DNA of 64,000 bases from Rebecca billardiae RCC1528 (Eukaryota > Protista > Haptophyta), in NCBI GenBank assembly GCA_965240325.2, contig OZ251233.1:1674001-1738000 (forward strand), written 5' to 3'. Shown piece by piece: positions 1,791 through 52,884 of this stretch (the stretch's first letter is position 1; every line of letters begins with the position of its first letter). A program made the translations under genes and the position numbers. The notes under the pieces are model-generated. The model had not been told where the DNA came from. It saw only the letters and a program-made list of their open reading frames with translations, and made no database searches.

Positions 1791-3590
1791 TCAGCCGTCG
1801 TGCGGATTGGCCGGAATCGGATTCGGCTGCGCGCCGCCACCAGCGGCGGCCAGTCTTTGCTCTGCTCGGGGCGTGAGCGCAGCGTAGCTGAGCTTGGGCA
1901 TGATCGGGGCCAGCGTGGTGCCCGTGTGGTAGGCGATGGGCGCGCTGCGCTCGCTGGGATCTGCGAGGCCGATCTGCCAGCTGTCCACGAGGCCTGCGAG
2001 GAGCGCGCGCATCTCCAGCGACGCGACGCGATAGCCCGGGCACTTGCGCGCGCCCGCGGAGAAGGGCGCGGACAGGATCGGGTGGTCGAGAACCTCGGCC
2101 GCCGTGCCCTTCCGCGCCGCCACGCCCTCCGGGAGCCAGCGCTCGGGGCGGAAGGCCTCAGGCTCGTCGAGGAGGCGCGGGTCCAGCACGAGCGAGTGGT
2201 TGTCCAGCGCGACGAGCGCGCCGCGCGGCACGCGGAAGCCAGACAGCTCGACGTCCTCCTCCATCTGCTTGATGGAGGAGAGCACGAGCGCCGGCGTGAG
2301 GCGGTGGGCCTCGCGCACCACCGCCTTGAGGTAGGGCAGCCCCCCGCCCGGCGCGCCCGCCCCGTCTCCGCCGATGGCCGCCTCAAGCGGGCCCTCGGCC
2401 AGCGCCGCGCGCACCTCCTCGCGCACGCGCTGCTGCACCGCCGGCTCCCGCGCCAGGTGGGCGAGCGTCCAGCAGGTGATGGAGGACGTCGTGTCCACCG
2501 ACGCGATGAGCGTGAGCGACACCGCGGCGACGATGTCCTCGTCTGCCAGCGTCGGCCGCCCCGTCTCCGCGGCCTCCGCCCGCTGGCGGCGCAGCGTGTT
2601 CACAGCATAGGAGCGCTGCTCTGCGTCCGTGAAGGCCGCGCCGCGGTCCCAGCGCTCGATGATGTCCCGCACCGCCTCGTCCGAGTAGTCCAGCGCGTCC
2701 AGCATGGCCCGCTCAAAGCCGCGGCGCTTGCCCGACTTGAGCCCCAGCCCGCGCGCGAGCAGCGACGGCAGGTGCTGCATCACCGGCACGAGGCTGTCGA
2801 GCGCATCGATCGTGTCGCCGGCAAACTTGGACGCGGCGGGCTCCGCGGCGCCGGGGGAGGGGTCCGAGGTGCGCGTGCGCCGGCCGAGGGTGAGGGTGCT
2901 GAAGAGGTCGAACGAGGCGCGCGACATGAACGCGCTCGCGTCCTCCCACAGCGGCGCATTCAGCACCACGTCGCTCGCGGCGTCCGCGATGGCCGGAGCG
3001 TAAGAAAGCGCCGCCGCGGGTGGCAACAGGTCCTTCTGAAAGCCGTGGCGCATGCGGCGCCAGTCCTCCGTGCGCGTGTAGAGCTTGGCGACGGTGCGGC
3101 CCGTCTCGCGGAAGCAGCTAATGGCGGGCCAGTGCAGCATGATGGCGCCGAACGGAAACTTGCCCTCCGCGCGCAGAGCCTTCATGAACTCGCGTGGGTC
3201 GGCGCAGATGTGCACCTCGCCCGAAAGCCCCGCGCCTATGCCGGGTATGCCGATGCGCCAGACTGGGCCGAAGCGCCGGTGCCCTTCGGCGAACGCGCGA
3301 TGATGGTCCACCGTCGCGTCCACTCGCTCACCGCTGGGGAGCGCGAGCGACTTGACCCACGGGAGGCTCCCGAGCACAGGAAGCATCGGGAAGCCAGGGG
3401 CGCGCGGGCCGGCAGTAGCGGGCGCTCCCACGGCGGGCGTAGCGGCACTCGTGGACTTGCCCGCGCGGGGGCGCAGGCTGAGACGGGCGCCGTAGCGGCG
3501 AGGCGCGGCGGCGAGGTGGCCAGCGATCGACATGACGTGTTGGGTCGCTCGTCGTCGGCCGGCCGTCAGCTGAGCTGGAGACTGGCTCAT
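1791..3590 (-). CDS. Cytochrome P450
   Basis: C-helix WRRMR, I-helix ASVDTTS, ExxR (EAHR), PERW, heme motif PFSAGARKCPG; Arg/Ala/Ser-rich transit-peptide-like N-terminus. Confidence 0.95.
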   Translation of the reverse strand: MSQSPAQLTAGRRRATQHVMSIAGHLAAAPRRYGARLSLRPRAGKSTSAATPAVGAPATAGPRAPGFPMLPVLGSLPWVKSLALPSGERVDATVDHHRAFAEGHRRFGPVWRIGIPGIGAGLSGEVHICADPREFMKALRAEGKFPFGAIMLHWPAISCFRETGRTVAKLYTRTEDWRRMRHGFQKDLLPPAAALSYAPAIADAASDVVLNAPLWEDASAFMSRASFDLFSTLTLGRRTRTSDPSPGAAEPAASKFAGDTIDALDSLVPVMQHLPSLLARGLGLKSGKRRGFERAMLDALDYSDEAVRDIIERWDRGAAFTDAEQRSYAVNTLRRQRAEAAETGRPTLADEDIVAAVSLTLIASVDTTSSITCWTLAHLAREPAVQQRVREEVRAALAEGPLEAAIGGDGAGAPGGGLPYLKAVVREAHRLTPALVLSSIKQMEEDVELSGFRVPRGALVALDNHSLVLDPRLLDEPEAFRPERWLPEGVAARKGTAAEVLDHPILSAPFSAGARKCPGYRVASLEMRALLAGLVDSWQIGLADPSERSAPIAYHTGTTLAPIMPKLSYAALTPRAEQRLAAAGGGAQPNPIPANPHDG

Positions 3591-12281: not shown

Positions 12282-12533
12282 CGCCCGCGCCGAGGGGGCG
12301 GACGACTGGTGCTTGGCCGAGAGGGAGCCGCGCTTGAAGGCCGGTGCGCACAGCGGCTGCGCACACTGGCGCCTCCCCGTCCGGTGGCGACAATTTTGCG
12401 ATCAGGAGTTTGGCCGCGAAATCGAGCACAAAATCCGCCGCACGGCGCACGATGGCGTTGGCGATTTTATCCGCGCGGCTTTCCGCTGTCAACGGACGCA
12501 CGGCCAACTGGCCAAGTCCGTCTGGCGAAGACA

Positions 12534-13690
12534 TGACACGCTCACGGCCGGCCGACGCGTCCGTCGCCGGCGACACATCCATGGGCGGACGAGGCACCCT
12601 TGGCGCAGAGACCCTCGAGGAGCTCTGGCACGACGAGCCAGCGCTCATCGTTGGGCCGCTCGTTGTTGGCGTTGGGTTGCAAAGCCTGTGGCATATCCCC
12701 GCCTTCGCTGAGCATGCCGCCGCGCACGGCATCGAACCGTGGGGCGTGTACAACGCGATGCACTACACAGCGTTCGCCATCTTGCTCGCCTACGCTTTTC
12801 ACGGCTTTGTATGCACGCATGTCCCCATCACGCTGAAGTTCCAAAAGAAGCGAGCTCCCGACCTGAGCCCTGCCGCTGCCGCCACGCGCAACACTGCCAT
12901 CCTGCTCACGGAGCTTGTGTACACGTCGCTACCGCTGCGGCCACCGAGTTCGAGCTGGCTGCACTTCCTGGCGGCGCTTGCAGCATTCACCGTGCTGTGG
13001 GACATCGAGTTCTTCCTCGTGCACAAGGCAGCTCACGAGTCGCGCTGGCTGTACACCTGCGTGCACAAGCTGCACCACGCGATCAAAGACCCAAACTGCT
13101 TTGGAGCATATTTCGTTTGGTATCAATCTCACGTGCTGCTCGAGCAGCTTGTGGTGGTGACCTGCTGCCTTGCGTTCTTGCCGCGTGACGTCTTCATCTT
13201 TGTGATGTACACGTGCACCCTTGGCACGTACATCGAGCACGCAGGATGCGACGTGAAGCAGCTCAAGTTGCCCTTCCTACCTATCCGGTGCGGCCACATC
13301 TTGGATGCACTGCTGCTGCACGCTGCGCCGCTCGGCATCATGGGCGCAGGCCACCACGACTGGCATCACGAGAAGTTCACGGCGAACTACGCGCTGTATT
13401 TCACCTGGCTCGACCGACTGTTCGGGACGTACAACCCTGGGCGCAAGGTGGAGGATCCAGCCGTCGAGCCTGCCTTGCCTAAGGGCGGTGTTTGCGAGTT
13501 GGCAGAGGCAACAGGCAGCACAACACTGCCGCACCTGGTCCCAGTTCCCAGTTCGAGGCTGCAGCAGACTGCACCAAGCCTGGACACACCATCCTCGCCG
13601 TTTGGTGTGCAGCCCGATGTGCAGGCCTGCGATGGCTTGGCTGCCATCAACTGTTCATTCAACTCATCAAGCCCATCAGCAGCTAACTAA
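12534..13690 (+). CDS. Fatty acid hydroxylase / sterol desaturase family protein (start 12534 or 12581)
   Basis: His boxes HKAAH, HKLHH, EHAG, HHDWHH followed by NYALYFTWLDRLFGT; TM segments. Confidence 0.9.
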
Positions 13691-16346: not shown

Positions 16347-18164
16347 TCAGTCTCGTCGTCTGCCGCCCTTCTGTGCACAGACCACGTACCGCGTGCTAGG
16401 GCTGGTATCCGCATCACGTGGCAGCTCGTCGAGGGAGTGCGCGTCGTAGAGCTTCACCTCTCCACCAAACGCCTCCTCGAAGAGCTGGCGCACGCGTAGC
16501 ATCGACGGCAGGTGTCTGCGGTGCGTGCCGGCGTCCTTGATTCGAACTCGCTCGCCGCGGAGATCGATGTTCACGATGCTCGAATCCTGGTGCGTCCGGC
16601 AGCCGTCCTCGACCAACATCGGGATGCGCAGGCTGACCACATGCCCGCCGATGCCGACGATTAGGTTGGGGTACCAACGGACGTGGTCGGGTGCGATGAA
16701 GTCGCCAAAGAAGTGGCCATCGTCGCACAGGACGGCAGCTGTGTTGCGCACTGCGTCGCGCATGCGCTCCGCAGGGAGGTACTGGAACACGTTGAGCCCA
16801 GCGAATGCGACGTCGAACTCACCGAAGTCGTCTCGGTCCATGCGCAGCACGTCGCCGGTGCGCGCATTGAGGCCGCGTTGCTGCGCGGCCGCAGCCTGCG
16901 CTGGCGAGAGGTCGAAGGCGAGCAGATTCGCGGCGCGCACGCCTTGCTCGCGCACGATGTGGGCTTCGACCACGCCCGTGCCACAGCCGATGCTCAGCAG
17001 CCTGCACGCTGCGGGCTCGGGCACGTGCAGGTCGAAGAAGCGCCTTATAAACCCGGCCATGAAGCCATCGAGGCAGGGCTGCCCAATCAGCGCATCGTAC
17101 ACGTCCGCGTATTCAGCAAACGCATCGCCTCCTCCAGCCTCGGCAGCCCCGTCGACGGGTGTGGCGGACTCTGGGCGCGTCTCCGTCTCCACCTCCAGCG
17201 CTGCCCACTCGCGGACGGTCCGGTGCAGCTGGGCGAACCAGCGCGCGTCGGTGGCGTGGTCTGTCTCTGACACGTGGCTGCGCAGCTCGGTGAGCAGCCG
17301 AGCGTGCATGCGCGCTGGCTGCTGGAACAGCGTCTGCAGGAGCCAGGCCTCGCTTCGGCCGCCGCCCACTGGGCGGTCGGCAGCGGCGGCACGGCACACG
17401 CGGCGAGTGGCGAAGATGAGATCGCGCAGCCAAGTCGTGAAGTCTGCCTCGACTGCCGTTCGCTCGACGTTCGCCGCACCCGCTGGCACTGGGAGGAAGG
17501 CACCACCATGCACAAGGGCGACGCTGCCCGTGCACGCCTCAAAGAGGCGATTGCGATCAGTGACGACGCGATCGGCCGTGGTGCCGAGGCGGGCATGGAT
17601 GTGCAGGCTGAGCACGGGCGTGTCGCCCACGTTTCTGAACTGGTGGATCATCTCCCGACCGACAGCGATCGTGCCGCGGTCGGGCAACAGCGAGCAGTCC
17701 ACCATCTGCAGCCGCTCGCCATCGGACACAAACTTGGCGTACTCAAGCGAGCCACCAAACACCTGCACACACCCGCAGTGCACGTCGGCACCACTGTTGT
17801 GGATCGCGGAAACGTCTCCAGGAAGCCATGTCCGTGCCATCAGCTCAAGCGCACCCGCCAGGTGGATCGTCTTCTCGCCGTAGCTGTCCTCTGGTGGGTG
17901 TTCAAAGTCAGCCCACGCCATCAGGTCGTGCTCCGTGATAGCGGCGTCGCTGACAGCCGTCGTGAGCTTGGCTGCGTTGAGGCGCGGCTCTGCCTGGAGC
18001 GAGCGAATGAGGCTCGAAAGGGCCGCAGAAAGGCGCGGGACGCCGTGCCGCTCACGACACGCCGCCATTGGCGTGATGCCCAGCGGTCTACCATCCCTGG
18101 GGCGGATGCGCTGCCACGTGGGGGAAACGACCTCCCGAGCGGCAACCCGCGGTACCCTGAGCAT
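16347..18164 (-). CDS. Cysteine-dioxygenase-like cupin fused to class I SAM methyltransferase
   Basis: N-half SYGEKTI...ELMARTWLPGDVSAIHNSG...IHQFRN...LSLHIH (CDO-like); C-half LLSIGCGTG, AFDLSP, GDVL, FDVAF (SAM motifs). Confidence 0.8.
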   Translation of the reverse strand: MLRVPRVAAREVVSPTWQRIRPRDGRPLGITPMAACRERHGVPRLSAALSSLIRSLQAEPRLNAAKLTTAVSDAAITEHDLMAWADFEHPPEDSYGEKTIHLAGALELMARTWLPGDVSAIHNSGADVHCGCVQVFGGSLEYAKFVSDGERLQMVDCSLLPDRGTIAVGREMIHQFRNVGDTPVLSLHIHARLGTTADRVVTDRNRLFEACTGSVALVHGGAFLPVPAGAANVERTAVEADFTTWLRDLIFATRRVCRAAAADRPVGGGRSEAWLLQTLFQQPARMHARLLTELRSHVSETDHATDARWFAQLHRTVREWAALEVETETRPESATPVDGAAEAGGGDAFAEYADVYDALIGQPCLDGFMAGFIRRFFDLHVPEPAACRLLSIGCGTGVVEAHIVREQGVRAANLLAFDLSPAQAAAAQQRGLNARTGDVLRMDRDDFGEFDVAFAGLNVFQYLPAERMRDAVRNTAAVLCDDGHFFGDFIAPDHVRWYPNLIVGIGGHVVSLRIPMLVEDGCRTHQDSSIVNIDLRGERVRIKDAGTHRRHLPSMLRVRQLFEEAFGGEVKLYDAHSLDELPRDADTSPSTRYVVCAQKGGRRRD

Positions 18165-41381: not shown

Positions 41382-42384
41382 TGCTGAGTGAGACACACTG
41401 CACCACGAGCGCAGCAGAGGACGGTCCATGAGCGCATGGAGGAGCGTCTCACGGACACATTGCGGCTCGACGCCTGGAGGACGGTGATCTGGTCAGTCCG
41501 GGAAGCGGCACCGCCACCGGCAGCATGGAGCTTCTAGTGGACCCGCTGGACCGCCGGAACTGCGCTGACATGAGTCACGTGATGAGCCACAAGTCACGAG
41601 TCGCGTCGAATCGGCGCCACCGTGGCCGTCGTACTGTACGACGTACAGCTTATTACCCGAAGGCGCGCAGCTCTCCCAGGACCGAGTGCCGCCGTGAGTA
41701 GTGGCCGGCGGCAGTGCGGCTGCGCCCGCACGCCGTGTGCCTGTACGACTGGGCGCCGTGACGTCGGCCTCACTCACGTCGTCTATCTATAGACGTCGTC
41801 CGCGACGACGCGGTCAGCGGTGTGACACACGGTGTCACTAGTCGGTCCGGTACGACTGTCACACCGACTGGTCAGACGCGGATTCGGAACGGCCGCTCCA
41901 GTGAGAACACTGACGAACAGCACACACATATATATATATATATATATACACATATATATATATATGTGCTGTTATTGGTACAATAACTGAGTGTGTACGA
42001 GCTGCATGACGGAGGGGCTCGCTGTGAGGCCTCTGCACTCCACTTACCTGTTTCGTCGCAGCCGCCCTCGCAGAATTTCAGGACTCTTCTGCGGGTACGC
42101 CGCGGGTGCACGAGCAAAGTGCCCCGAGTGCCAGAGCGGCGGACGAACCAGCCATGCTGCTGCCCCCGGGCATTCGGCAAGTCATCGGCGCGAGCACCGC
42201 CTCGCTTCTCGAGCAGCGAGCTGGGAATCGGCAGCGCACAACCTGAGCGCGCCAGGTACCTCTCGCCTCGTCCTTCGACCACAGGATGCCCACCATCAAC
42301 TCGTCTCAGCAAGTTGTCCCTCGGCTGCGCACGAGTGCACCACGCAGCAGCGCAGCAGCAAACGACCAGCAGCTGCTTTGTTTG

Positions 42385-43166
<782 letters not shown>

Positions 43167-43167
<1 letters not shown>

Positions 43168-45788
43168 TGCATGCAGCGATCGGGAGGGATCGTACGCGCG
43201 GCGCTTTCTCATCGATCGCGCCGATGAGCACGAGCGGCCGGTACTACGGCTCGGTCGACGTTGGGAGCCTCAACGACAAGGGGATTCAGCAGCGTTGGCT
43301 CGCGCAATCGGCGAGCAAGCTGGCGGCGCTTCCGGCGGGGCAAGGTGCTACGATGTCCGCACTGAACGGCATCATCGTGACGCACGGCCCGAACGCGGAG
43401 CACCGCATCAACACGCTCGAGGAGTACAACTCGACGTGGGAGACATTCAACCCATCCGCTGCCAAGATGATCAAGGTCAGTGCCGAGCGGATGGACCTGG
43501 CGCGTGAGAACTACGCGCTGCAGCAGCGGCTGCTCGACCATCGCCACGAGCACGAGCGCCGCGAGCACGCCGAGCGCCGGGCCGCGGCGGAACGCGCGGC
43601 GGCGGCGGCGGCGGGGGCGAGGCAGGCGCCAAGCTACGCGCAGGCTGCCTCGGCGGGCGCGGGGAGTGGTTTAGCCACTCCGGGTGGCCCGACGGCGACC
43701 GGACCGGGTTCAGGTCCGGCGGCGGGCGGCGGATCCGGAATTTCTCCGGGTCCGGCGGCCGGCACACCCGGTCCGGGTGTGGGCACAGGCGGCGCTGCAG
43801 GTGCGCCGGCTGGGACTGACGGCGCGACGCCTGCGGGCGGCGCCGGCGTCGGCGCGGCGCCTACGGGCGGCGCCGGCGGGATCGGTGGCGCGGCGCCCGC
43901 GGGTGGCGCTGCCGTGACGCTCGATCCGCGCGCGCGCGAGCTCTACCGCCGCGAGCGCGAGACCGAGGAGCAGATGCATGAGCGGCAGGCGAGCGAGCAT
44001 GCTATGCTGGACATCAAGCTCCGACAGAGCGTGTTGGAGGCAGCGCCGGACGGCGACGAGGCGGACCCCGCCAAGTACGCCGGGGCGCAGTACGAGAAAG
44101 GGACGGCTTTCTTACGCACCGAGCTGCGGTCGTGGGTGACGGAGGCTGCGTGGCAGCACATCAACCGCCTCATGGAGACGCAGCCGGAGGTGCAGGAGGA
44201 GCGCGCGCGCCGGGGCGCACTTACGCCGGGGCGCGAGTTTCTGTACCTGTGGAAGACGATCCTGCGCATGCGCAAGCCCGACGACATGCGGAAGTACATG
44301 TCGGTGCGGGCACGCTGGCACCGGACGGTCCTGCCGGATTGCGGCAAGGACGGCGTCGGCGCCCTCGAGCTCTTCCAGGTGCTACAGCACAACCACGTGC
44401 TGCTGCAGGAGCTGAGTGACGCAGCGCCAGCGGCGGAGATGCTTGCGCGGCTCATCGAGTTCATTCCGTCGGTGGGCGCGGGCATCGAGATGCGGACGCG
44501 GTACGAGTCGAAGGACTACAGGACCGTGACGAACTTCGACGTGCAGGAGCTCGTGCACGAGCTCAACGGCAAGTTCGAGGACTGGGACTTCTCCAAGGGC
44601 AAGCGGGTTGACCGCGGCGGCCCTGGGCGCCCAGGGGCGGGTGGCCGCACGCCAGGAGGCGGCGGCGCTACCCGCGCGCACCCAATCGACGGGCTCCGCC
44701 TGGCGCAGGCGGCGGCGGCGTCGGCGGGTGGCGGCGGCGGCGACACGACGTCGCCGGCTGGCCGTGGTGGCGGCGGCGGAGGTCGTGGCGGTGGCGGCGG
44801 CGGCACTGGCCGCGGCGCCGGCCGCGGAGGCCAGGACGACTCCGACGACGCGCACGGGCCGCGCTGCTACAAGTGCGGCGCCGTGGGGCATATCAAGCGT
44901 TATTGCCCGCAGGTGACGCAGGCTGATCGCGACTCGAACGCTGGCGATGACGCGGCGTCGACGCGGTCGGATCGCAGCCGTGGCTCACATCGGAGCGGCG
45001 GTGGCGGTGGCGGCGGCGGTGCGGGGGGCAGCACCCGCGCCGTGGTCGGGAATGGCAACGGCGGCGGCACGGTCCGCACGCAGGTCGCGTTCGCACCCGA
45101 GCAGGGTGACGAGCCCGACGGCGCCGTTGGTGGCGACGGTGACGCTGACGCCGGAGACGGCGGCGGCGCCGGCGCCGGACTCGGCTTGGCGCCTATTGGC
45201 GCGGCTATCGGCGGCAGGGCGCAGCGCGACGAGGACATCGAGATCGTCGCGGCGCGGGCGGCCGAGGCACGCGTGGCGCCGCCGGAGGACAACACGCGGG
45301 CGTTGGTGTTTGACACTGGCGCACGGAAGAACATCGCCATGGCCGAGGATTTGACGAATCTTACCCCGGTGGACGGCGCATGTCAGATCGAGTGGGGGAA
45401 CGGTGCGCGGGAGCGGGTCACTCACCGCGGGACCCTGGTGGTCAAGCTTGCGGCGGACGACGACAGCGACAAGGTCCTCACGCTCGAGATCGAGGCGTGG
45501 GCGTCGCGGCGCGTCACGGCGCCGCTGCTGTCGGTCGAGCACTGCGCGGACGCAGGCATCGAGTTCCACTACTCGCAGCGCGGCAACACTGCGGACTTTA
45601 CGGCGCTGGGAGGCGGCGTCGTGCAGCTGCCGCGCGATTCCACGCTGCGCGCCGAGATTGTACGGCGCCAGGTGGGGCCGGACGTCGGCGATGCGCCGGC
45701 GGAGCAGCGCGCACGGCGCAGGGCGCCAGTGCGGCGCGTGGGCGCGGGGCGGGGGCGCGTTGGCGCTGCGCCGCCCCCAAACGCCTAA
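43167..45788 (+). CDS. gag: Copia Gag-protease ORF (likely start ATG 43224)
   Basis: Zinc knuckle CYKCGAVGHIKRYC; aspartic protease VFDTGA followed by WGNG...GTL and PLLSV. Confidence 0.9.
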
Positions 45789-45805
45789 GCCCGGAACCCG
45801 CGCAG

Positions 45806-48800
45806 GTGCGAGCCACAAACACAACCACTACGGTATCTAATACCACTACTACTACGGAGGCGGCGCGAGGCGCTGATCCGGCGTGGTTACGCACTTGGTC
45901 GGTTCGAACGGGCACCAATGACCAACGTCTACTCGAGCGCACGCGACGCGTGGCCGAGGGGATGGAGGGGGCGAACGCGCGGCGTGAGCCGCTTGACGAG
46001 CAGTCGGCGGCGGGCATGACGCGGCGGTCGTTCGCGGACGCGATGCCGACGGCGCACTACCCTGGGCAGGTGACGCACGTCGACATCTTCTCTATGGCGC
46101 GGATCGACTTACCAGTTGGGGCCGATGGCGCACGTGGAGGGTATCCTCATGGGATCATATTCATCGATGGGCATTCACGTCGATGGCAAGTGTACGCGCT
46201 ACGCAGCTTGGATGACGCCGAGGTTGGTCGGGCATTCCGCTGGTACGCGCAGTTGCTTGGTACAGGGGCCATGCACATGTCGCATTGGGTCCTGGCGTCG
46301 GGGTGTACTATGGCGCGACGCCATATTCACACCGACGGTGGCTCGACGCTGCTGAGTACGTACGTCGAGGGTGAGCTGGCGAAGCTTGGGTTCTCGTCGA
46401 CGGTCACGTCGGCGCCCGACTCGCCGAGCTCGAATGGCGTGGCGGAACGCGCTATCCGCACGCTGAAGTCGAGACTGCGCGCCACGGTCGTTGCGCGTGG
46501 AGTCTCGAGGGTCGATTGGCACTACGCGGCGTGGCACGCATGCGCGTCGCGCAATCGACTGGCGTCACGTGGTATCATTCGTGACGATGGCGACATTGAG
46601 TGGCTCACGCCGGATGAGCTGTTCTTTGGCAAACGCCCGACGTGGAAGCATCACGTGGCGTTTGGCGCGCGCTGCCGCGTGCTGATGCTGGGCGCACGGC
46701 GCAATGCATTGGGGCAGCTGAAGCAGCGCGCACTACCCGGACGTGTCTATCTCTGGGGTGGGCACGGCGTGCAGTGGCGCGGTACATGGCGCTACGTGCT
46801 TGGGTACGTATGTCGTTTAGACGACGGACGTCTCGTTCACTCACGTGACGTACGCATCGACGAGACCGACCTGGTCGAGGGGGGGCACTCGTCGCTGGGC
46901 GCACCTGACGGTGGCGCGTACGTGGGTGATGGTGACGACGCCGCGGTAAGCGGCGGATATCGTCCAGTCGGCGGTGACGCCGACGGTGAGGACGAGGACG
47001 GCGATGGCGGCGAGACGCCAGCCGACGCCGGGAATGACGACGCGACAGAGTTCGACGTCGGGTACGACGACGACGCAGATGCGTCAACGTCGGGGCGCGG
47101 GCGCAGCAGCGTGGACGCGGGACAACGCGGGTGCAGCAGCGCGGGCGCACAGCCGTCGACGTCGACGCCGCAGGGCGGGCGCGGCGGGGCAGGCGCGTCA
47201 ATGACGCAGCCGGGTCGGCAGGATCAGATACCGCCGACGGAATCACGGCGCGGGACCGCAGCAGATGCTGGCGGGTCGCCGCGCGGCGCAGACGGTGACG
47301 ACGGCGTGATCGAGGACGCGCCGCCGCCCGGTCTGGATATGGGACACGATCCGCTTCGCAGGGATCGGACGTCACGCCGACGGCCGCAGCTGCTTACTGC
47401 CGTCGTCAGCGCCGCGTCGGTGTTCCAGAAGATCAACGTGAAGGTGCCGACGAACTATCGCGAGGCGATGCGGTCGGCGGAGGCGCCCCAGTGGCAGGGC
47501 GCCATGCTCGAGCACTTGGAAGGTCACAAGTTGCTCGGCACCTCGGAGGAGGTGGTGGTTCCGGAGGGCACGCGGGTGTTGCCGAGCCAGTGGGTCTTTG
47601 ACGTCAAGTCGAACCCGGAGGGCGAGGTGACGCGCTTCAAGGCGCGGTCGGTGCTACTGGGGAACCTACAGCGGCCGGGGATCGACTTTCAGGAGGTCTT
47701 TGCTCCGACGATCCGGCCGGAACAAGTGCGACTACTCGTTGCGATCGCCGCTCAGCAGGCGGGCGCGAGGGTCGACTTGGGTGGAGCGTCGGTTGCAGCG
47801 CTGGGCATACTGTCGAAGGGCGACGTCAAGGACGCGTACCTCAACTCGGAGTTGAAGCCGGATGAGCGGCCTCTCTTCTCATTCCCGCCGGGCTACGTGC
47901 CGAGCACGCAGGCGCCGCCGGGGCACAAAGTCGTGGGCCGGAGCCTGAAGGCGTATCCGGGCCTACGCCAGTCTGGGCGCGCGTGGCATCGCACGCACCG
48001 CACCCAGCTGCTCGCGCGCGGCTTCTCGGAGTGTCCGAGTGCGCCGTGCATCTACGTCAAGGAGTCGGCGCCGGGCGAGTTCATCATCGCGGGCGGCTTT
48101 GTCGACGACTTGCTGTTTCTCAACCTGACGCGCGACGCGCGCGCGGTGGAGAAGCTGGCGGCTGACCTGAAGGAGCATTACGAGATCAAGCTGAGTGAGC
48201 GGCTCGATAAGTTCCTGGGCGCCGTGTTTGAAGTTCATGACGACGGCATCCTGATGCACCTGGGGCCGTACGTCGAGAGCGTGCTTCAGCGGTTCGGTTT
48301 GAACGCGAGCACGCCGGCGCGCACGCCGGAGCCGGCGGCGCGGACGCAGCTGAGCGACGACGATGAGGCGTTGCTGCAGCGCGCGGAGATTGAGAACTAC
48401 CAGGCGATGGTGGGATGTCTCATGTTTGCGATGGTCACGGCGCGGCCGGACATCGCGCACGCGGTGAACATGCTGACGCGACGCATGTCACGTCCGCGGG
48501 CGGTGGATCTGGTAAGTGCGAAGCGCGTGCTGCGCTACTTACGTGGATGCCCGCGATTGGGAATCTTGTTCAAGTTTGCGACAGATTCCGAGCACCCCGA
48601 CCTACTTGCTTTCGCTGACTCCGATTGGGCAAGCAATCCGGTGGAGACCAAGGGCAGGTCAACGGGTGGATACATTGTGTTCTACAATGGGGCGCCGGTG
48701 TCGTGGCACAGCGGGCTGCAAGGTACAGTCTCGCTGAGCTCGACGGAGGCGGAGTACGTCGCGCTGAGCGATTGCTGCCGCGAGGTGAGCTACTTGCGGA

Positions 48801-49090
48801 GCATACTCGAGTCCATGCGGCAGCCGCCGCGGGCCGCGACGGAGGTGCGAGAGGACAACAAGGGGGCTATCGACCTCGTGGAGAATCCTGTGCACCACAA
48901 GCGCTCGAAGCACATCGAGATCAAGCATCACTATGTGCGTGACGCGCAGGAGGGTGGCAAGGTGAAGGTGGTCAAGGTACACACCTCACTCAACCACTCT
49001 GACATCATGACGAAGGCGACGGACGGTGCGACGTTCAAGCGGCACGTCGACGCCATCATGGTGGACCGACACCCGACGCGCGCGCGGTAA
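45806..49090 (+). CDS. pol: Copia integrase-RT-RNase H region (frame open from 45380 or earlier; -1 relative to gag-PR)
   Basis: IN HVDIF / HTDGG / NGVAER; RT RFKARSV, DVKDAYLN, PGLRQSGRAW, FVDDLL; RH FADSDWA, SSTEAEY, EDNKGAI, SDIMTK. Confidence 0.95.
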   Translation: MRATNTTTTVSNTTTTTEAARGADPAWLRTWSVRTGTNDQRLLERTRRVAEGMEGANARREPLDEQSAAGMTRRSFADAMPTAHYPGQVTHVDIFSMARIDLPVGADGARGGYPHGIIFIDGHSRRWQVYALRSLDDAEVGRAFRWYAQLLGTGAMHMSHWVLASGCTMARRHIHTDGGSTLLSTYVEGELAKLGFSSTVTSAPDSPSSNGVAERAIRTLKSRLRATVVARGVSRVDWHYAAWHACASRNRLASRGIIRDDGDIEWLTPDELFFGKRPTWKHHVAFGARCRVLMLGARRNALGQLKQRALPGRVYLWGGHGVQWRGTWRYVLGYVCRLDDGRLVHSRDVRIDETDLVEGGHSSLGAPDGGAYVGDGDDAAVSGGYRPVGGDADGEDEDGDGGETPADAGNDDATEFDVGYDDDADASTSGRGRSSVDAGQRGCSSAGAQPSTSTPQGGRGGAGASMTQPGRQDQIPPTESRRGTAADAGGSPRGADGDDGVIEDAPPPGLDMGHDPLRRDRTSRRRPQLLTAVVSAASVFQKINVKVPTNYREAMRSAEAPQWQGAMLEHLEGHKLLGTSEEVVVPEGTRVLPSQWVFDVKSNPEGEVTRFKARSVLLGNLQRPGIDFQEVFAPTIRPEQVRLLVAIAAQQAGARVDLGGASVAALGILSKGDVKDAYLNSELKPDERPLFSFPPGYVPSTQAPPGHKVVGRSLKAYPGLRQSGRAWHRTHRTQLLARGFSECPSAPCIYVKESAPGEFIIAGGFVDDLLFLNLTRDARAVEKLAADLKEHYEIKLSERLDKFLGAVFEVHDDGILMHLGPYVESVLQRFGLNASTPARTPEPAARTQLSDDDEALLQRAEIENYQAMVGCLMFAMVTARPDIAHAVNMLTRRMSRPRAVDLVSAKRVLRYLRGCPRLGILFKFATDSEHPDLLAFADSDWASNPVETKGRSTGGYIVFYNGAPVSWHSGLQGTVSLSSTEAEYVALSDCCREVSYLRSILESMRQPPRAATEVREDNKGAIDLVENPVHHKRSKHIEIKHHYVRDAQEGGKVKVVKVHTSLNHSDIMTKATDGATFKRHVDAIMVDRHPTRAR

Positions 49091-49126
49091 GCGGCGCAGC
49101 TCGCGGCTATGGCTGTCGAGGGGGGG

Positions 49127-49736
49127 TGTTGAGCTGACGCAGCCTGGGGCGCGCATCTCAGCAGATGGCGTCGCCGCTGGGACGTCAGGGCCGGCGCCGC
49201 ACCAGGCGGGCCGGCGTCATCAGCTACGGAGCAGTGGCTGGCTGGCGGCGCGCGCGCGCGGCGCGCGCGGCGGCAGGAGCGCGAGCGCAGCAGCGCTGGC
49301 GCGGATCGACGTGGACGCGGAGCGCGGACGCGGCAGCGCGGACGCGGAGCGACACGGACGCGGCGCGTGCGCGGGCGGTACGGCCCGGCGCAGCGCGGCA
49401 CGGTGACGTCGCACGGGCATGGCCCGGACGCCATCGTGGGAGTCCATCCGGATTTCCACTTTCGGAAAAGTGGGAATCCGGCTGAGGGTGGACGGACGAG
49501 GACGTCCGGGAGTTACGTCGGGACGGGCGGTTTTCGGGAAGGTAACGCATTCCCCGGAGCCGGCCGCGACGTGGTCACCCCGCGACCAAAAAGGTCGGCG
49601 GGAGGTTAGCTTGTCTTCGTAAAGGAGCGAAGGGAAGGAGGTTGCCTCTCGTGGTCAACATCGACGACGCGCCCGAGGACGCGCCGGTGAGCTTTTAGCA
49701 GGGCTCGACACGCTCGGAGCTCGCGTTTACCCAATA
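49127..49736 (+). repeat. 3' LTR
   Basis: Direct repeat of 42558-43167, preceded by the PPT. Confidence 0.97.
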
Positions 49737-50150
49737 ATATATATCGATATGACAATGTTGGTGACACTGGCATATAACTAGTTACGACACGTGAGCAGCA
49801 CGTTCATTGATTGATCGCGCGCGGCGCTGGGAGGTCGGATGATTGTGGTCGACGTCGTCACTGGCACCGCGATGCCGACAGCTACTAGCTAGGCGGCCAC
49901 TGTTACAGTTACAGAGTCAAATAAAAGGTGACTGAGGTCTGAGCATAACTACTGCTGTTATGACGACGTCGCCACTTACGCAGCGGGTGTCGCCCATATA
50001 ACGGTATAATAATCCAGTCACTAGTTTAGTTAGGTGGTACCTTAGAAGGATGGTGTCACAGTAGTCAGTTGGCCTCGCAGTTCGGATGACGTTGTGGAAG
50101 CCTGGGCTGAATGCTGATATCGATCAGTCATCGTCAATTAATACGTACAG

Positions 50151-50510
<360 letters not shown>

Positions 50511-50719
50511 GTGACATCAACGTCAACCACTCAATGCTGACTCACCGTTGGCGCCCGTCATTGTCGGATTCCAATGTAAACTATATAATTTTTTTGTTGC
50601 GGAACATGTATGCGCTAGCTGCTGGTCGGTGGTGACCGTTGATGCCTTCATCGACATCGTCGGAACGGTTTCCGATTCTTAATTACTGCCAGCTCCAGAT
50701 ATATATGTCAGTGCTGGTG

Positions 50720-50721
<2 letters not shown>

Positions 50722-50802
<81 letters not shown>
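50722..50802. repeat. (TA)n microsatellite
   Basis: Direct observation. Confidence 0.97.
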
Positions 50803-50805
<3 letters not shown>

Positions 50806-50991
50806 CAGACGCCAATATCATCAGTCGTCATCACACGGCGACTACATATACGCTATACGCGGTCCGGCGGTGTGACAGAGTACTCGTTACTTAGTGACCG
50901 TCGTCGTACTAAGTTATAACTTCCGTGAATCGCGACTGGGAACGCCGCCGCCACTTAGCTCAGCTGTGCAGTGGCCCAGGTAAGCCATTCA

Positions 50992-51639
50992 TCAGGAAAG
51001 ACTGCGGCCGTCACGTTCGGGTGGCATCGCCGAGGACGAGACACTGCTACGCCACGGCAGCACCACCGGAATTGAGCCGTGCCATCTGCAGGCCGTGCCG
51101 CCTTTTCCGTTCTCGTTCCGGCCAAAGCCAGTGATGCGCTCTTCGAAGGTCAGTGCCACCCCACGCTCACGGCATGCAGATGCATGTTGCTGGACGATGG
51201 CCTGTAGGTCTGCCGCAAACGCATGTGTGCCCTTGTGCTTCAGGTAATGGTGAGCTCCATTCCCGCCCACGCCGAGCAGCACGAAGAGAACGACCACGAG
51301 GATCAACGGCCAAATGATTGCGCCTTCCGTGATGCCAGCCACGACACCAGTCGCGAGAAACGCGGGGGGCAAGATGATGACGCCCGGTATCACCACCCGG
51401 CGCGTGGTATCCATCTTGTACCCGTTGGAGATCAGCTTGTCAGCTGCCTCACAGAATGCATCGCGGATTTGCGCCCAAGAGTCTGCGCGGAGCTGTGCCT
51501 GTACTTGGCCCGGGACGGCCGACTCCCGATCATACGAGGGAGTCAGTACTGTGGCGAAGCACTTCCCTGGCGACTCGATGACCTGTAGCACTGCTACCGT
51601 CTCCGTCTCTTGCATCTCGACGCTTTTCGAGTTTCCCAT
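50992..51639 (-). CDS. Two-TM membrane protein with MG-xx-KS myristoylation-like start (ERF4/Golgin-A7-like architecture possible)
   Basis: MGNSKS start; two hydrophobic helices; RERGVALTFEE after the TMs. Confidence 0.6.
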   Translation of the reverse strand: MGNSKSVEMQETETVAVLQVIESPGKCFATVLTPSYDRESAVPGQVQAQLRADSWAQIRDAFCEAADKLISNGYKMDTTRRVVIPGVIILPPAFLATGVVAGITEGAIIWPLILVVVLFVLLGVGGNGAHHYLKHKGTHAFAADLQAIVQQHASACRERGVALTFEERITGFGRNENGKGGTACRWHGSIPVVLPWRSSVSSSAMPPERDGRSLS

Positions 51640-52884
51640 CTCGCGAGCACGGCCGCGGCGCAAGTTCGTGTGTCGTCGGACGGGAGCCACCTGGGACGGT
51701 CGTCGTTTCGTCTGAACAATGATGAGTACAGTATGAATGTATGATATATAATAGTACTACTGTGGTAAGTAGGAATAAAGCAGATATGCTATGATTGATA
51801 GGATCTTGCATGCACTTCCGGGTAAGCGTATAAGACCGCGTTACAGCGAAAACCGACTACGAAAAGAAAGGAGGCGCGATGACCGATGTTGGTCCGCAAG
51901 CAAAGTCGTACAGTAGTAGCTTTTTTCTCTCGAGCGACGACCGCGACGCTCCGCGACATCACACCAAGCAAGGGCCGTAATCACACGATCATCACTCTTT
52001 CTCTCGCGAGTTATATAATTCTGGGTGCCGAACCTCCAGCGAGTGATGTCGCCGTTTAATCATAGAATGAGTCTGAGAGCACTCCTGTCGGTCTAGACGG
52101 AGAGGAGAGGTCAGAGGACGGCCCAGGCCTGCCGCGGGCGCACATCAGGGCAGTCTGTGAGGCATACTAGCAGCCGTCGACCGCACGGGCCAAGGGCAAG
52201 TGTGATTGAAGTGAGTCACTGACGGACTGAGACTGTCACTGTGTCTGTGCATGTGTTCAAAGTCTTGTGCCCTTGTGACGACTGTGCCGCACCAGACAGC
52301 ACACGGTCCCGAATCCCGATGTGACGGCGGTAATGAGTAATCACTGGGACGGACAGTGAGTCACAGTGACCCGGCGTCTCGGGCCGTGAACTAAGCCTCT
52401 ATCTAGAGACCGTAGACAGTACTGTAGACAGTAGTCAGACAGTGACAGTCACGGTACGGTCGGTAGACTGATCGATGATCGTCTGCTGACGATGAGTGAT
52501 TGATGATGGCCTGATGGGCCTGGACCTGGTCTGTAGAGTGTAGAGTTGAGTACTGATAACTTCATCGAACCGTGTTAAAACGTGTTACTACACCTCAGTG
52601 ACTAGGCTACACGGTGTCCCAACGCGGACCGTGAATTAAACGTCGGTACTCGAAATACTATTATTATAATACTGTAGTAAGTGTAGCTGCTTACGTCGCA
52701 GATGATTAAATATTATTTATTATAATAATACTATCGGAATTATTATTGCTGTGGCATAATAACATGACGACACAATATAATACTACGTCCGGTGTGCAGG
52801 GTCCGGTTCGGGTGTCGCCACTGCGAGTTGCCATCGGCAATGTTGGCAGGGGCCCATTATCAGCATGGCAATGAATCATGGCAT

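Follow-up and report, generated by a model that had tools for sequence, protein, structure and literature searches.

Probable programmed -1 ribosomal frameshifting after the protease in a Ty1/copia retrotransposon of the haptophyte Rebecca billardiae and in its relatives

Copia elements are textbook retroelements with a single open reading frame (ORF). The 64,000-nucleotide stretch of Rebecca billardiae RCC1528 analysed here (contig OZ251233.1, positions 1,674,001 to 1,738,000; hereafter the window, to which all coordinates refer) carries a long terminal repeat (LTR) retrotransposon of this group that is instead divided into two overlapping frames, with the break lying between its protease (PR) and its integrase (IN). 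An earlier reading of the same DNA (the original prediction) had suspected that this break is programmed, bypassed either by an intron or by a -1 frameshift, and that a copia lineage might in this way express Pol by a strategy not described before. Comparison of genomic copies and distant relatives supports the core of this claim, and of the two bypass routes only -1 frameshifting has comparative support. We conclude from these sequence comparisons that expression of the polyprotein very probably involves a programmed -1 ribosomal frameshift located behind PR.

Anatomy of the element

The retrotransposon spans 7,179 bp (42558-49736) and encodes Gag, PR, IN, reverse transcriptase (RT) and RNase H (RH). 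The order Gag-PR-IN-RT-RH assigns it to Ty1/copia; it has paired LTRs, a polypurine tract, a CCHC knuckle in Gag and a polymerase recognized as RVT_2, and its RT-RH sequence falls inside copia in a phylogenetic tree. Its main features are the following:

42558-43167, + strand: 5' LTR of 610 bp, beginning with TGTTG and 100% identical to 49127-49736
43167-45788, + strand: ORF1 encoding Gag-PR, 873 codons counted from the first ATG, with the stop codon TAA at 45786-45788
about 44862-44912, + strand: CCHC zinc knuckle in ORF1 (Pfam zf-CCHC)
45261-45695, + strand: protease domain with active-site D-T-G at 45312-45320, assigned by AlphaFold model and fold match
45776-45782, + strand: slippery heptamer C CCA AAC in the phase of ORF1, one codon ahead of the stop; proposed -1 shift site
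45783-45788, + strand: 6-nt spacer GCCTAA, which includes the ORF1 stop TAA (45786-45788)
45782-49090, + strand: -1 frame encoding IN-RT-RH downstream of the proposed slip, with 1102 codons and the stop at 49088-49090
46082-46447, + strand: integrase catalytic core with invariant D, D and E at 46082-46084, 46334-46336 and 46445-46447
47552-48328, + strand: reverse transcriptase (Pfam RVT_2, E 3e-33)
49127-49736, + strand: 3' LTR, with the polypurine tract GAGGGGGGG at 49118-49126 just upstream

The positions given in the original prediction for the end of Gag-PR at TAA 45786-45788 and for IN-RT-RH in the -1 frame are correct: this frame is formally open from 45314 and ends at the stop 49088-49090. 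The LTRs, which had been described as identical, indeed match over all 610 bp, and C CCA AAC lies where it had been placed, in the correct frame one codon ahead of the stop. ATATA occurs at both flanks (42553-42557 and 49737-41) and is likely a 5-bp target duplication, ambiguous in that it sits within an (AT)n microsatellite. Overall, this is an intact and very recently active Ty1/copia LTR retrotransposon.

Pfam alone misses PR and sees IN of the window's copy weakly, and both were assigned by profile and fold searches. An AlphaFold model of PR (predicted local distance difference test, pLDDT, 79) matches the proteases of XMRV, FIV and HIV (E 1e-4, probability 1.0), and its active-site D-T/S-G in the C-terminal part of ORF1 is invariant, including the Asp. 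For IN, a profile of the clade described below matches Ty1 integrase (7z0h, E 1.4e-8), and Pfam rve is found in 6 of 8 clade members. RH lies downstream of RT, with a copia-type D-I-M-T-K motif near the end of the ORF.

The frame break in genomic copies

The surveyed genome (72 Mb in 41 contigs) contains at least 39 copies of the element that fall into two subfamilies, approximately 22 copies with 98-100% identity and approximately 17 with 95-96% identity. The latter share a 30-bp in-frame deletion:

45821-45850, + strand: 30-bp in-frame indel in T/N/V/S codons of an A/C-rich tract, separating the two subfamilies

We aligned 30 copies from 4-kb pieces around the break. The cassette of heptamer, stop and GCCCGG is identical in 30 of 30 copies, and in 27 of them the frames on either side of it are open for approximately 660 codons, while a genome-wide Pfam scan finds ORF2 intact in approximately 37 copies (1258 or 1248 aa). 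Logan contigs of the public run X1, which may be the same sample from which the window was assembled, cover 45170-45845 without an indel. The break is therefore neither a private indel of this copy nor an assembly error, and alignment of sister copies and relatives revealed no continuous PR-IN ORF in the family or its clade.

Divergence between the subfamilies further shows which frames are under selection. For IN-RT, the ratio of nonsynonymous to synonymous differences per site (pN/pS) amounts to 0.15 when the -1 frame is read, versus 1.5-3.7 in the other two frames; for PR in frame 0 it amounts to 0.10. PR and IN-RT are thus both under purifying selection in their respective frames. The tail of ORF1 after PR (45663-45785; pN/pS about 1.0) and a part of gag (43800-44699; about 1.1) bear no sign of constraint. 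Since both frames encode selected proteins, some form of recoding or splicing is required to join them. Apart from this, the same central part of gag (43800-44699) diverges by approximately 12% between subfamilies versus 0.3-1% for PR and IN-RT, which suggests that a Gly/Ala-rich gag module has been swapped or evolves very fast.

A slippery heptamer at the frame break of all relatives

Word-indexed and exhaustive protein searches with the ORF2 product retrieved 17 proteins of 35-57% identity, all of them 940-1260 aa long and consisting of IN-RT-RH alone. At the DNA level, we compared ten related contigs (L061-L067 and L068-L071). In all ten, the IN-RT-RH frame is -1 relative to the upstream ORF, which ends just before it or overlaps with it, and the contig of protein P0003, for which gene coordinates were compared, has the same -1 offset. 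Moreover, every related contig carries an in-phase heptamer of the type X XXY YYZ at 0-28 nt ahead of the ORF1 stop:

L061, L062 and L063: GGGAAAG, directly ahead of the stop
L065 and L070: GGGAAAC, directly ahead of the stop
L064, L068 and L069: GGGAAAC, 12-16 nt ahead of the stop
L066, L067 and L071: AAAAAAC, 24-28 nt ahead of the stop

The residues encoded by these heptamers vary (PN, GK, GN or KN), so that conservation concerns the nucleotide pattern. Such a pattern is rare in these elements: CCCAAAC is the sole X XXY YYZ heptamer (Y = A/T) in any phase within 5.9 kb of coding sequence of the window's element, and the background of 7.4e-4 heptamers per nt corresponds to a chance of approximately 0.007 per lineage that an in-phase heptamer lies no more than 30 nt from the stop. 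The window's element and the ten contigs have in common an overlapping -1 ORF with an in-phase heptamer in the overlap; in L062 the frames overlap by only 37 nt, and the heptamer lies inside. The break, its -1 offset and the heptamer are therefore present in all copies examined and across the clade, as expected if the break is programmed.

This recurrence also speaks to the idea that the break is an inherited, functionless defect of copies that are mobilised in trans, or else a systematic sequencing error at a homopolymer. All copies in the genome are young, a single master could have given rise to them, and the site follows a run of five C residues. However, the same architecture recurs at 35-57% identity in lineages that come from different samples, assemblers and sequencing projects and whose heptamers differ. 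In addition, purifying selection on ORF2 is strong, the Logan contigs agree with the assembly, and longer homopolymers elsewhere in the ORFs leave them unbroken. We regard a defect or error as exceedingly improbable, and it is largely refuted already.

Two of the related contigs deviate in other respects. In L067 (1480-1900), the integrase motif, which follows a G7 run, is displaced by one more frame, and this contig is a decayed copy or contains a homopolymer error of the Logan assembly. L061 (1-651), which is 57% identical in ORF2, comprises 216 codons upstream of the cassette without protease-like sequence that look coiled-coil or low-complexity, while its heptamer, spacer and helix are all preserved; this contig may represent a derivative that lacks the protease or arose by recombination.

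It has also to be considered that IN-RT-RH might be translated separately rather than as a fusion, by termination-reinitiation, internal initiation or from a subgenomic RNA. Gene callers place an ATG or GTG start of ORF2 in every relative, and the stop is directly beside the heptamer in several lineages, both of which speak for this reading. Yet these start codons are found at differing, non-homologous positions, and several of them truncate the conserved N-terminus W-S-x-R-x-G-T. Separate translation would also leave unexplained why the frame is constantly -1 and the heptamer always in phase, and it seems very improbable to us.

Predicted RNA structure downstream of the heptamer

Programmed -1 frameshifting at the heptamer would further be consistent with the RNA folds that are predicted immediately downstream. 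For the window's element this is a long and irregular stem-loop:

45789-45913, + strand: predicted stem-loop of 125 nt, with the 5' arm at 45789-45816 and the 3' arm at 45883-45913

Its 5' arm opens with GCCCG and its 3' arm closes with CGGGC, the latter located in codons of the N-terminal W-S-x-R-x-G-T motif of IN. Minimum-energy folding places a helix exactly 6 nt past the heptamer (+7) in the window's element and in L061, L062, L064, L065, L066 and L067. With L069 and L070, where it is also predicted at +7, this amounts to 9 of 11 folded sequences, and in one more (L071) the helix starts at +8. A helix of at least 5 pairs at a spacing of 6 nt has a background of 10-15% in each element, which corresponds to approximately 2e-6 jointly for six non-redundant lineages (the window's element, L061, L062, L064, L065 and L066). 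The predicted helix is strong in L061, L062, L064, L066, L067, L069 and L071, with compact G+C hairpins in L064, L066, L067, L069 and L071, and the 60-nt windows of L061, L062, L066 and L067 rank in the top 0.2-1.4% within their own elements.

The 5' arm sequence GCCCG is invariant in the window's element, L061, L062, L065 and L070, and its pairing partner CGGGC falls within the Thr/Ala-Gly codons of W-S-x-R-x-G-T. Beyond these pairs the arms covary between L061 (GCCCGCC/GGCGGGC) and L062 (GCCCGUC/GACGGGC), with the next pairs being CC/GG in the former versus UC/GA in the latter. In a common alignment, the invariant GCCCG/CGGGC pairs are the only ones in a shared register across lineages. Cognate arms pair with a mean of -25.5 kcal/mol versus -21.0 kcal/mol for non-cognate arms, and this difference is clear only for the window's element, L061 and L062. 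An A/C-rich tract, to which the original prediction had drawn attention as following the stop, is indeed present and forms part of the apical loop. It is variable, having lost 30 bp in one subfamily, and absent from relatives; it is thus no conserved feature, and we ruled it out as a signal.

Several observations weigh against frameshifting as described here. Two lineages use G GGA AAG as their heptamer, and a G in the last position usually makes for a weak slippery site in eukaryotes. L067 keeps heptamer and hairpin but needs one further frame change downstream near its G7 run, and L068 is without a clear helix. The stem arms of the window's element do pair better with each other than with the arms of other lineages, but modestly so. 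Finally, the role of the helix in the window's own element is the weakest link, because its stem-loop is long (125 nt) and has an energy that is only average for this GC-rich element.

Splicing of a short stop-removing intron in part of the transcripts, comparable to what is known for Ogre elements, would be the other way to join the two frames. The original prediction had described one candidate in particular:

45729-45805, + strand: 77-nt candidate intron; present, judged not to be a real feature

GT at 45729 and AG at 45805 are present, and removal of these 77 nt restores the frame, as do the alternative donors at 45660 and 45672; in arithmetical terms, all three fuse the ORFs. Furthermore, as it happens, the stop region reads AAA|GTAAGT in L061 and AAA|GTAGGT in L062. 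However, such signals are at chance level: the window's element contains 135 in-frame, stop-removing GT..AG pairs by chance (71-215 in relatives), and on the + strand of the window the proposed acceptor CGCGCAG occurs 44 times and the donor GTGCGG 28 times. No splice signal around the inter-ORF region, be it donor, branch site or acceptor, is common to the relatives, and GT is missing from the site in L065, L066 and L070. The ORFs overlap instead of being spaced apart, and the 77 nt are present in 30 of 30 aligned copies. The contigs of run X1 (library type unrecorded), which could confirm only the DNA, have no joints. Splicing would also leave the in-phase heptamers and the helix at 6 nt distance unexplained. 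We therefore consider an intron quite improbable, and programmed -1 frameshifting remains the reading that we follow below.

The clade and its integrase

To place the split coding region in the evolution of copia elements, we used an RT-RH tree of 40 rows (IQ-TREE quick search). The 17 proteins with IN-RT-RH only form one clade (SH-aLRT support 99), whose sister in this tree, L060, is a further, distinct copia locus of this genome. In all other copia elements sampled outside the clade, four more loci of the genome among them, the ORF with IN-RT-RH also contains PR and often Gag, and other copia families in the genome have open frames of about 2,000-2,300 aa. The split thus maps to a single change on the tree.

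The genome harbours a second copia family whose open frames are uniformly 1159 aa (or 867 aa) long, with loci on several contigs (G000:C18:1503262-1506282, C5:19532-22552, C26:143321-146341 and others). Its product is 39-40% identical to the deep-branching clade member P0069 over residues 29-1107, and from this similarity it would probably belong to the clade and have the same split into Gag-PR and IN-RT-RH.

The N-terminal HHCC zinc ligands of integrase were not found in the window's element, and the alignment looks similar across the clade. At the positions of W-H-x-R-L-G-H and C-x-x-C, the window's element has W-S-V-R-T-G-T and D-E-Q-S (45890-46010), while the DDE core is invariant; the deep-branching L068 retains Cys and His in the first motif (A-R-C-G-L-H). 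The loss of HHCC is a peculiarity of the lineage and no argument against its membership in copia. Taken as a whole, the clade, with members in this GC-rich alga and in contigs of metagenomes and public runs, would combine a -1 shift between PR and IN, a helix that reaches into the N-terminal codons of IN and the loss of the four HHCC ligands. In none of the sources that we could search is it treated as a group. We see roughly even chances for this reading, which would make the clade a lineage of Pseudoviridae in its own right, set apart by how it expresses its polyprotein and by a modified integrase.

Genomic surroundings

The element is embedded in a long (AC)n(AT)n microsatellite (42377-42557), and more (AT)n tracts are found on its 3' side (50105-50510) within a low-GC stretch (46% at 50001-52000). 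Host genes in the window include three long open frames at some distance. The first of these (1791-3587, - strand) encodes a cytochrome P450 (E 3e-48) whose database relatives are Logan proteins only, and the other two encode proteins with a fatty-acid hydroxylase domain (12344-13687, + strand) and a methyltransferase domain (16347-18161, - strand).

Comparison with known recoding systems

Frameshifting by -1 at X XXY YYZ heptamers is the standard device of retroviruses and of many gypsy and BEL elements. In the alpharetroviruses (Rous sarcoma virus, RSV, and avian sarcoma/leukosis virus, ASLV), PR ends the gag frame and the other enzymes follow in the -1 frame, reached via a heptamer, a short spacer and an RNA structure near the gag-pro stop. 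The element in the window is alike in that PR closes the gag frame and IN-RT-RH comes behind such a heptamer in the -1 frame. Unlike in these viruses, its order is PR-IN-RT-RH, the shift separates PR from IN and not from RT, and there is no env; the two are kin only as retroelements. Gag-pro sites of other viruses use A AAA AAC (MMTV, HTLV and BLV) or G GGA AAC (MPMV/SRV-1), and G GGA AAC is also known from a luteovirus. GGGAAAC and AAAAAAC of the clade match these classical viral heptamers letter for letter. The 6-nt spacer is another likeness to betaretrovirus and deltaretrovirus sites, but those viruses shift between gag and pro, and C CCA AAC of the window's element is a variant that fits the rule yet is uncommon.

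The known controls of the Gag:Pol ratio in copia elements (splicing, protein degradation, +1 shift and stop readthrough) all act upstream of PR. The clade described here would have in common with Ty1, Ty2, Ty4, 1731 and Tca2 that translational recoding in the copia group sets this ratio; unlike here, their recoding occurs at the gag|pol border, and the +1 shift of Ty1 takes place at CUU AGG C without heptamer or helix. In the described cases, Ty1, Ty2 and Ty4 shift by +1, Drosophila 1731 frameshifts between gag and pol, and Tca2 relies on readthrough of a stop (PMC5580714, PMC5009743, PMC5443660). By contrast, Drosophila copia, BARE1 and EVD produce a spliced subgenomic Gag mRNA (PMC5580714). 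They share the goal of an excess of structural protein, but use one ORF and splicing where the window's element has two frames and a translational signal.

A break after PR is a feature that the clade shares with Ogre and Retand, although these are gypsy elements without a -1 overlap. Both belong to the Tat group of Ty3/gypsy and have the organization GAG-PROT | RT-RH-INT, bypassed by a partly spliced intron in Ogre and consisting of a single stop codon in Retand (PMC6317226). Among Viridiplantae they are the only surveyed lineages with a break after PR, while the 16 copia lineages of the same survey have a single ORF or GAG | PROT-INT-RT-RH, and GAG-PROT | INT-RT-RH prevails in none of them (PMC6317226, supplementary file 5). 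The plant copia elements SIRE and Bianca likewise have a split coding region with two ORFs, but theirs is GAG | PROT-INT-RT-RH. PMC5009743 summarizes a 2003 survey in which none of the plant elements had its pol in the -1 frame. A search of the full-text literature for frameshifts between PR and IN or for copia frameshifts in haptophytes returned nothing relevant, and we know of no recoding studies for this algal lineage. What we describe is thus a familiar mechanism at a position that is undescribed for copia elements and that defines a clade.

Proposed mechanism and implications

In the proposed mechanism, most ribosomes would translate Gag-PR and terminate at TAA 45786, whereas a minority would slip back by one base on C CCA AAC (45776-45782). 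In the P site, tRNA-Pro would thereby exchange CCA for CCC, and in the A site tRNA-Asn would exchange AAC for AAA, while the helix starting at 45789, 6 nt downstream, would probably slow the ribosomes. Those that slipped would continue to a Gag-PR-IN-RT-RH polyprotein, approximately 1,970 residues long and to be cut by PR, with the outcome that structural protein is made in excess over the enzymes, as retroelements need. Slippage, its efficiency and the role of the helix are what we infer from the comparison of copies and relatives.

A clade of copia elements with what would be a classical viral -1 signal after PR suggests that such a solution has evolved independently from that of the retroviruses. 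It also provides a rule for annotation, in that such elements should not be scored as broken. Its members would constitute a set of short, naturally varied frameshift cassettes with three to four heptamers and with local as well as long-range helices, and the loss of the integrase zinc finger across the clade is a second lead.

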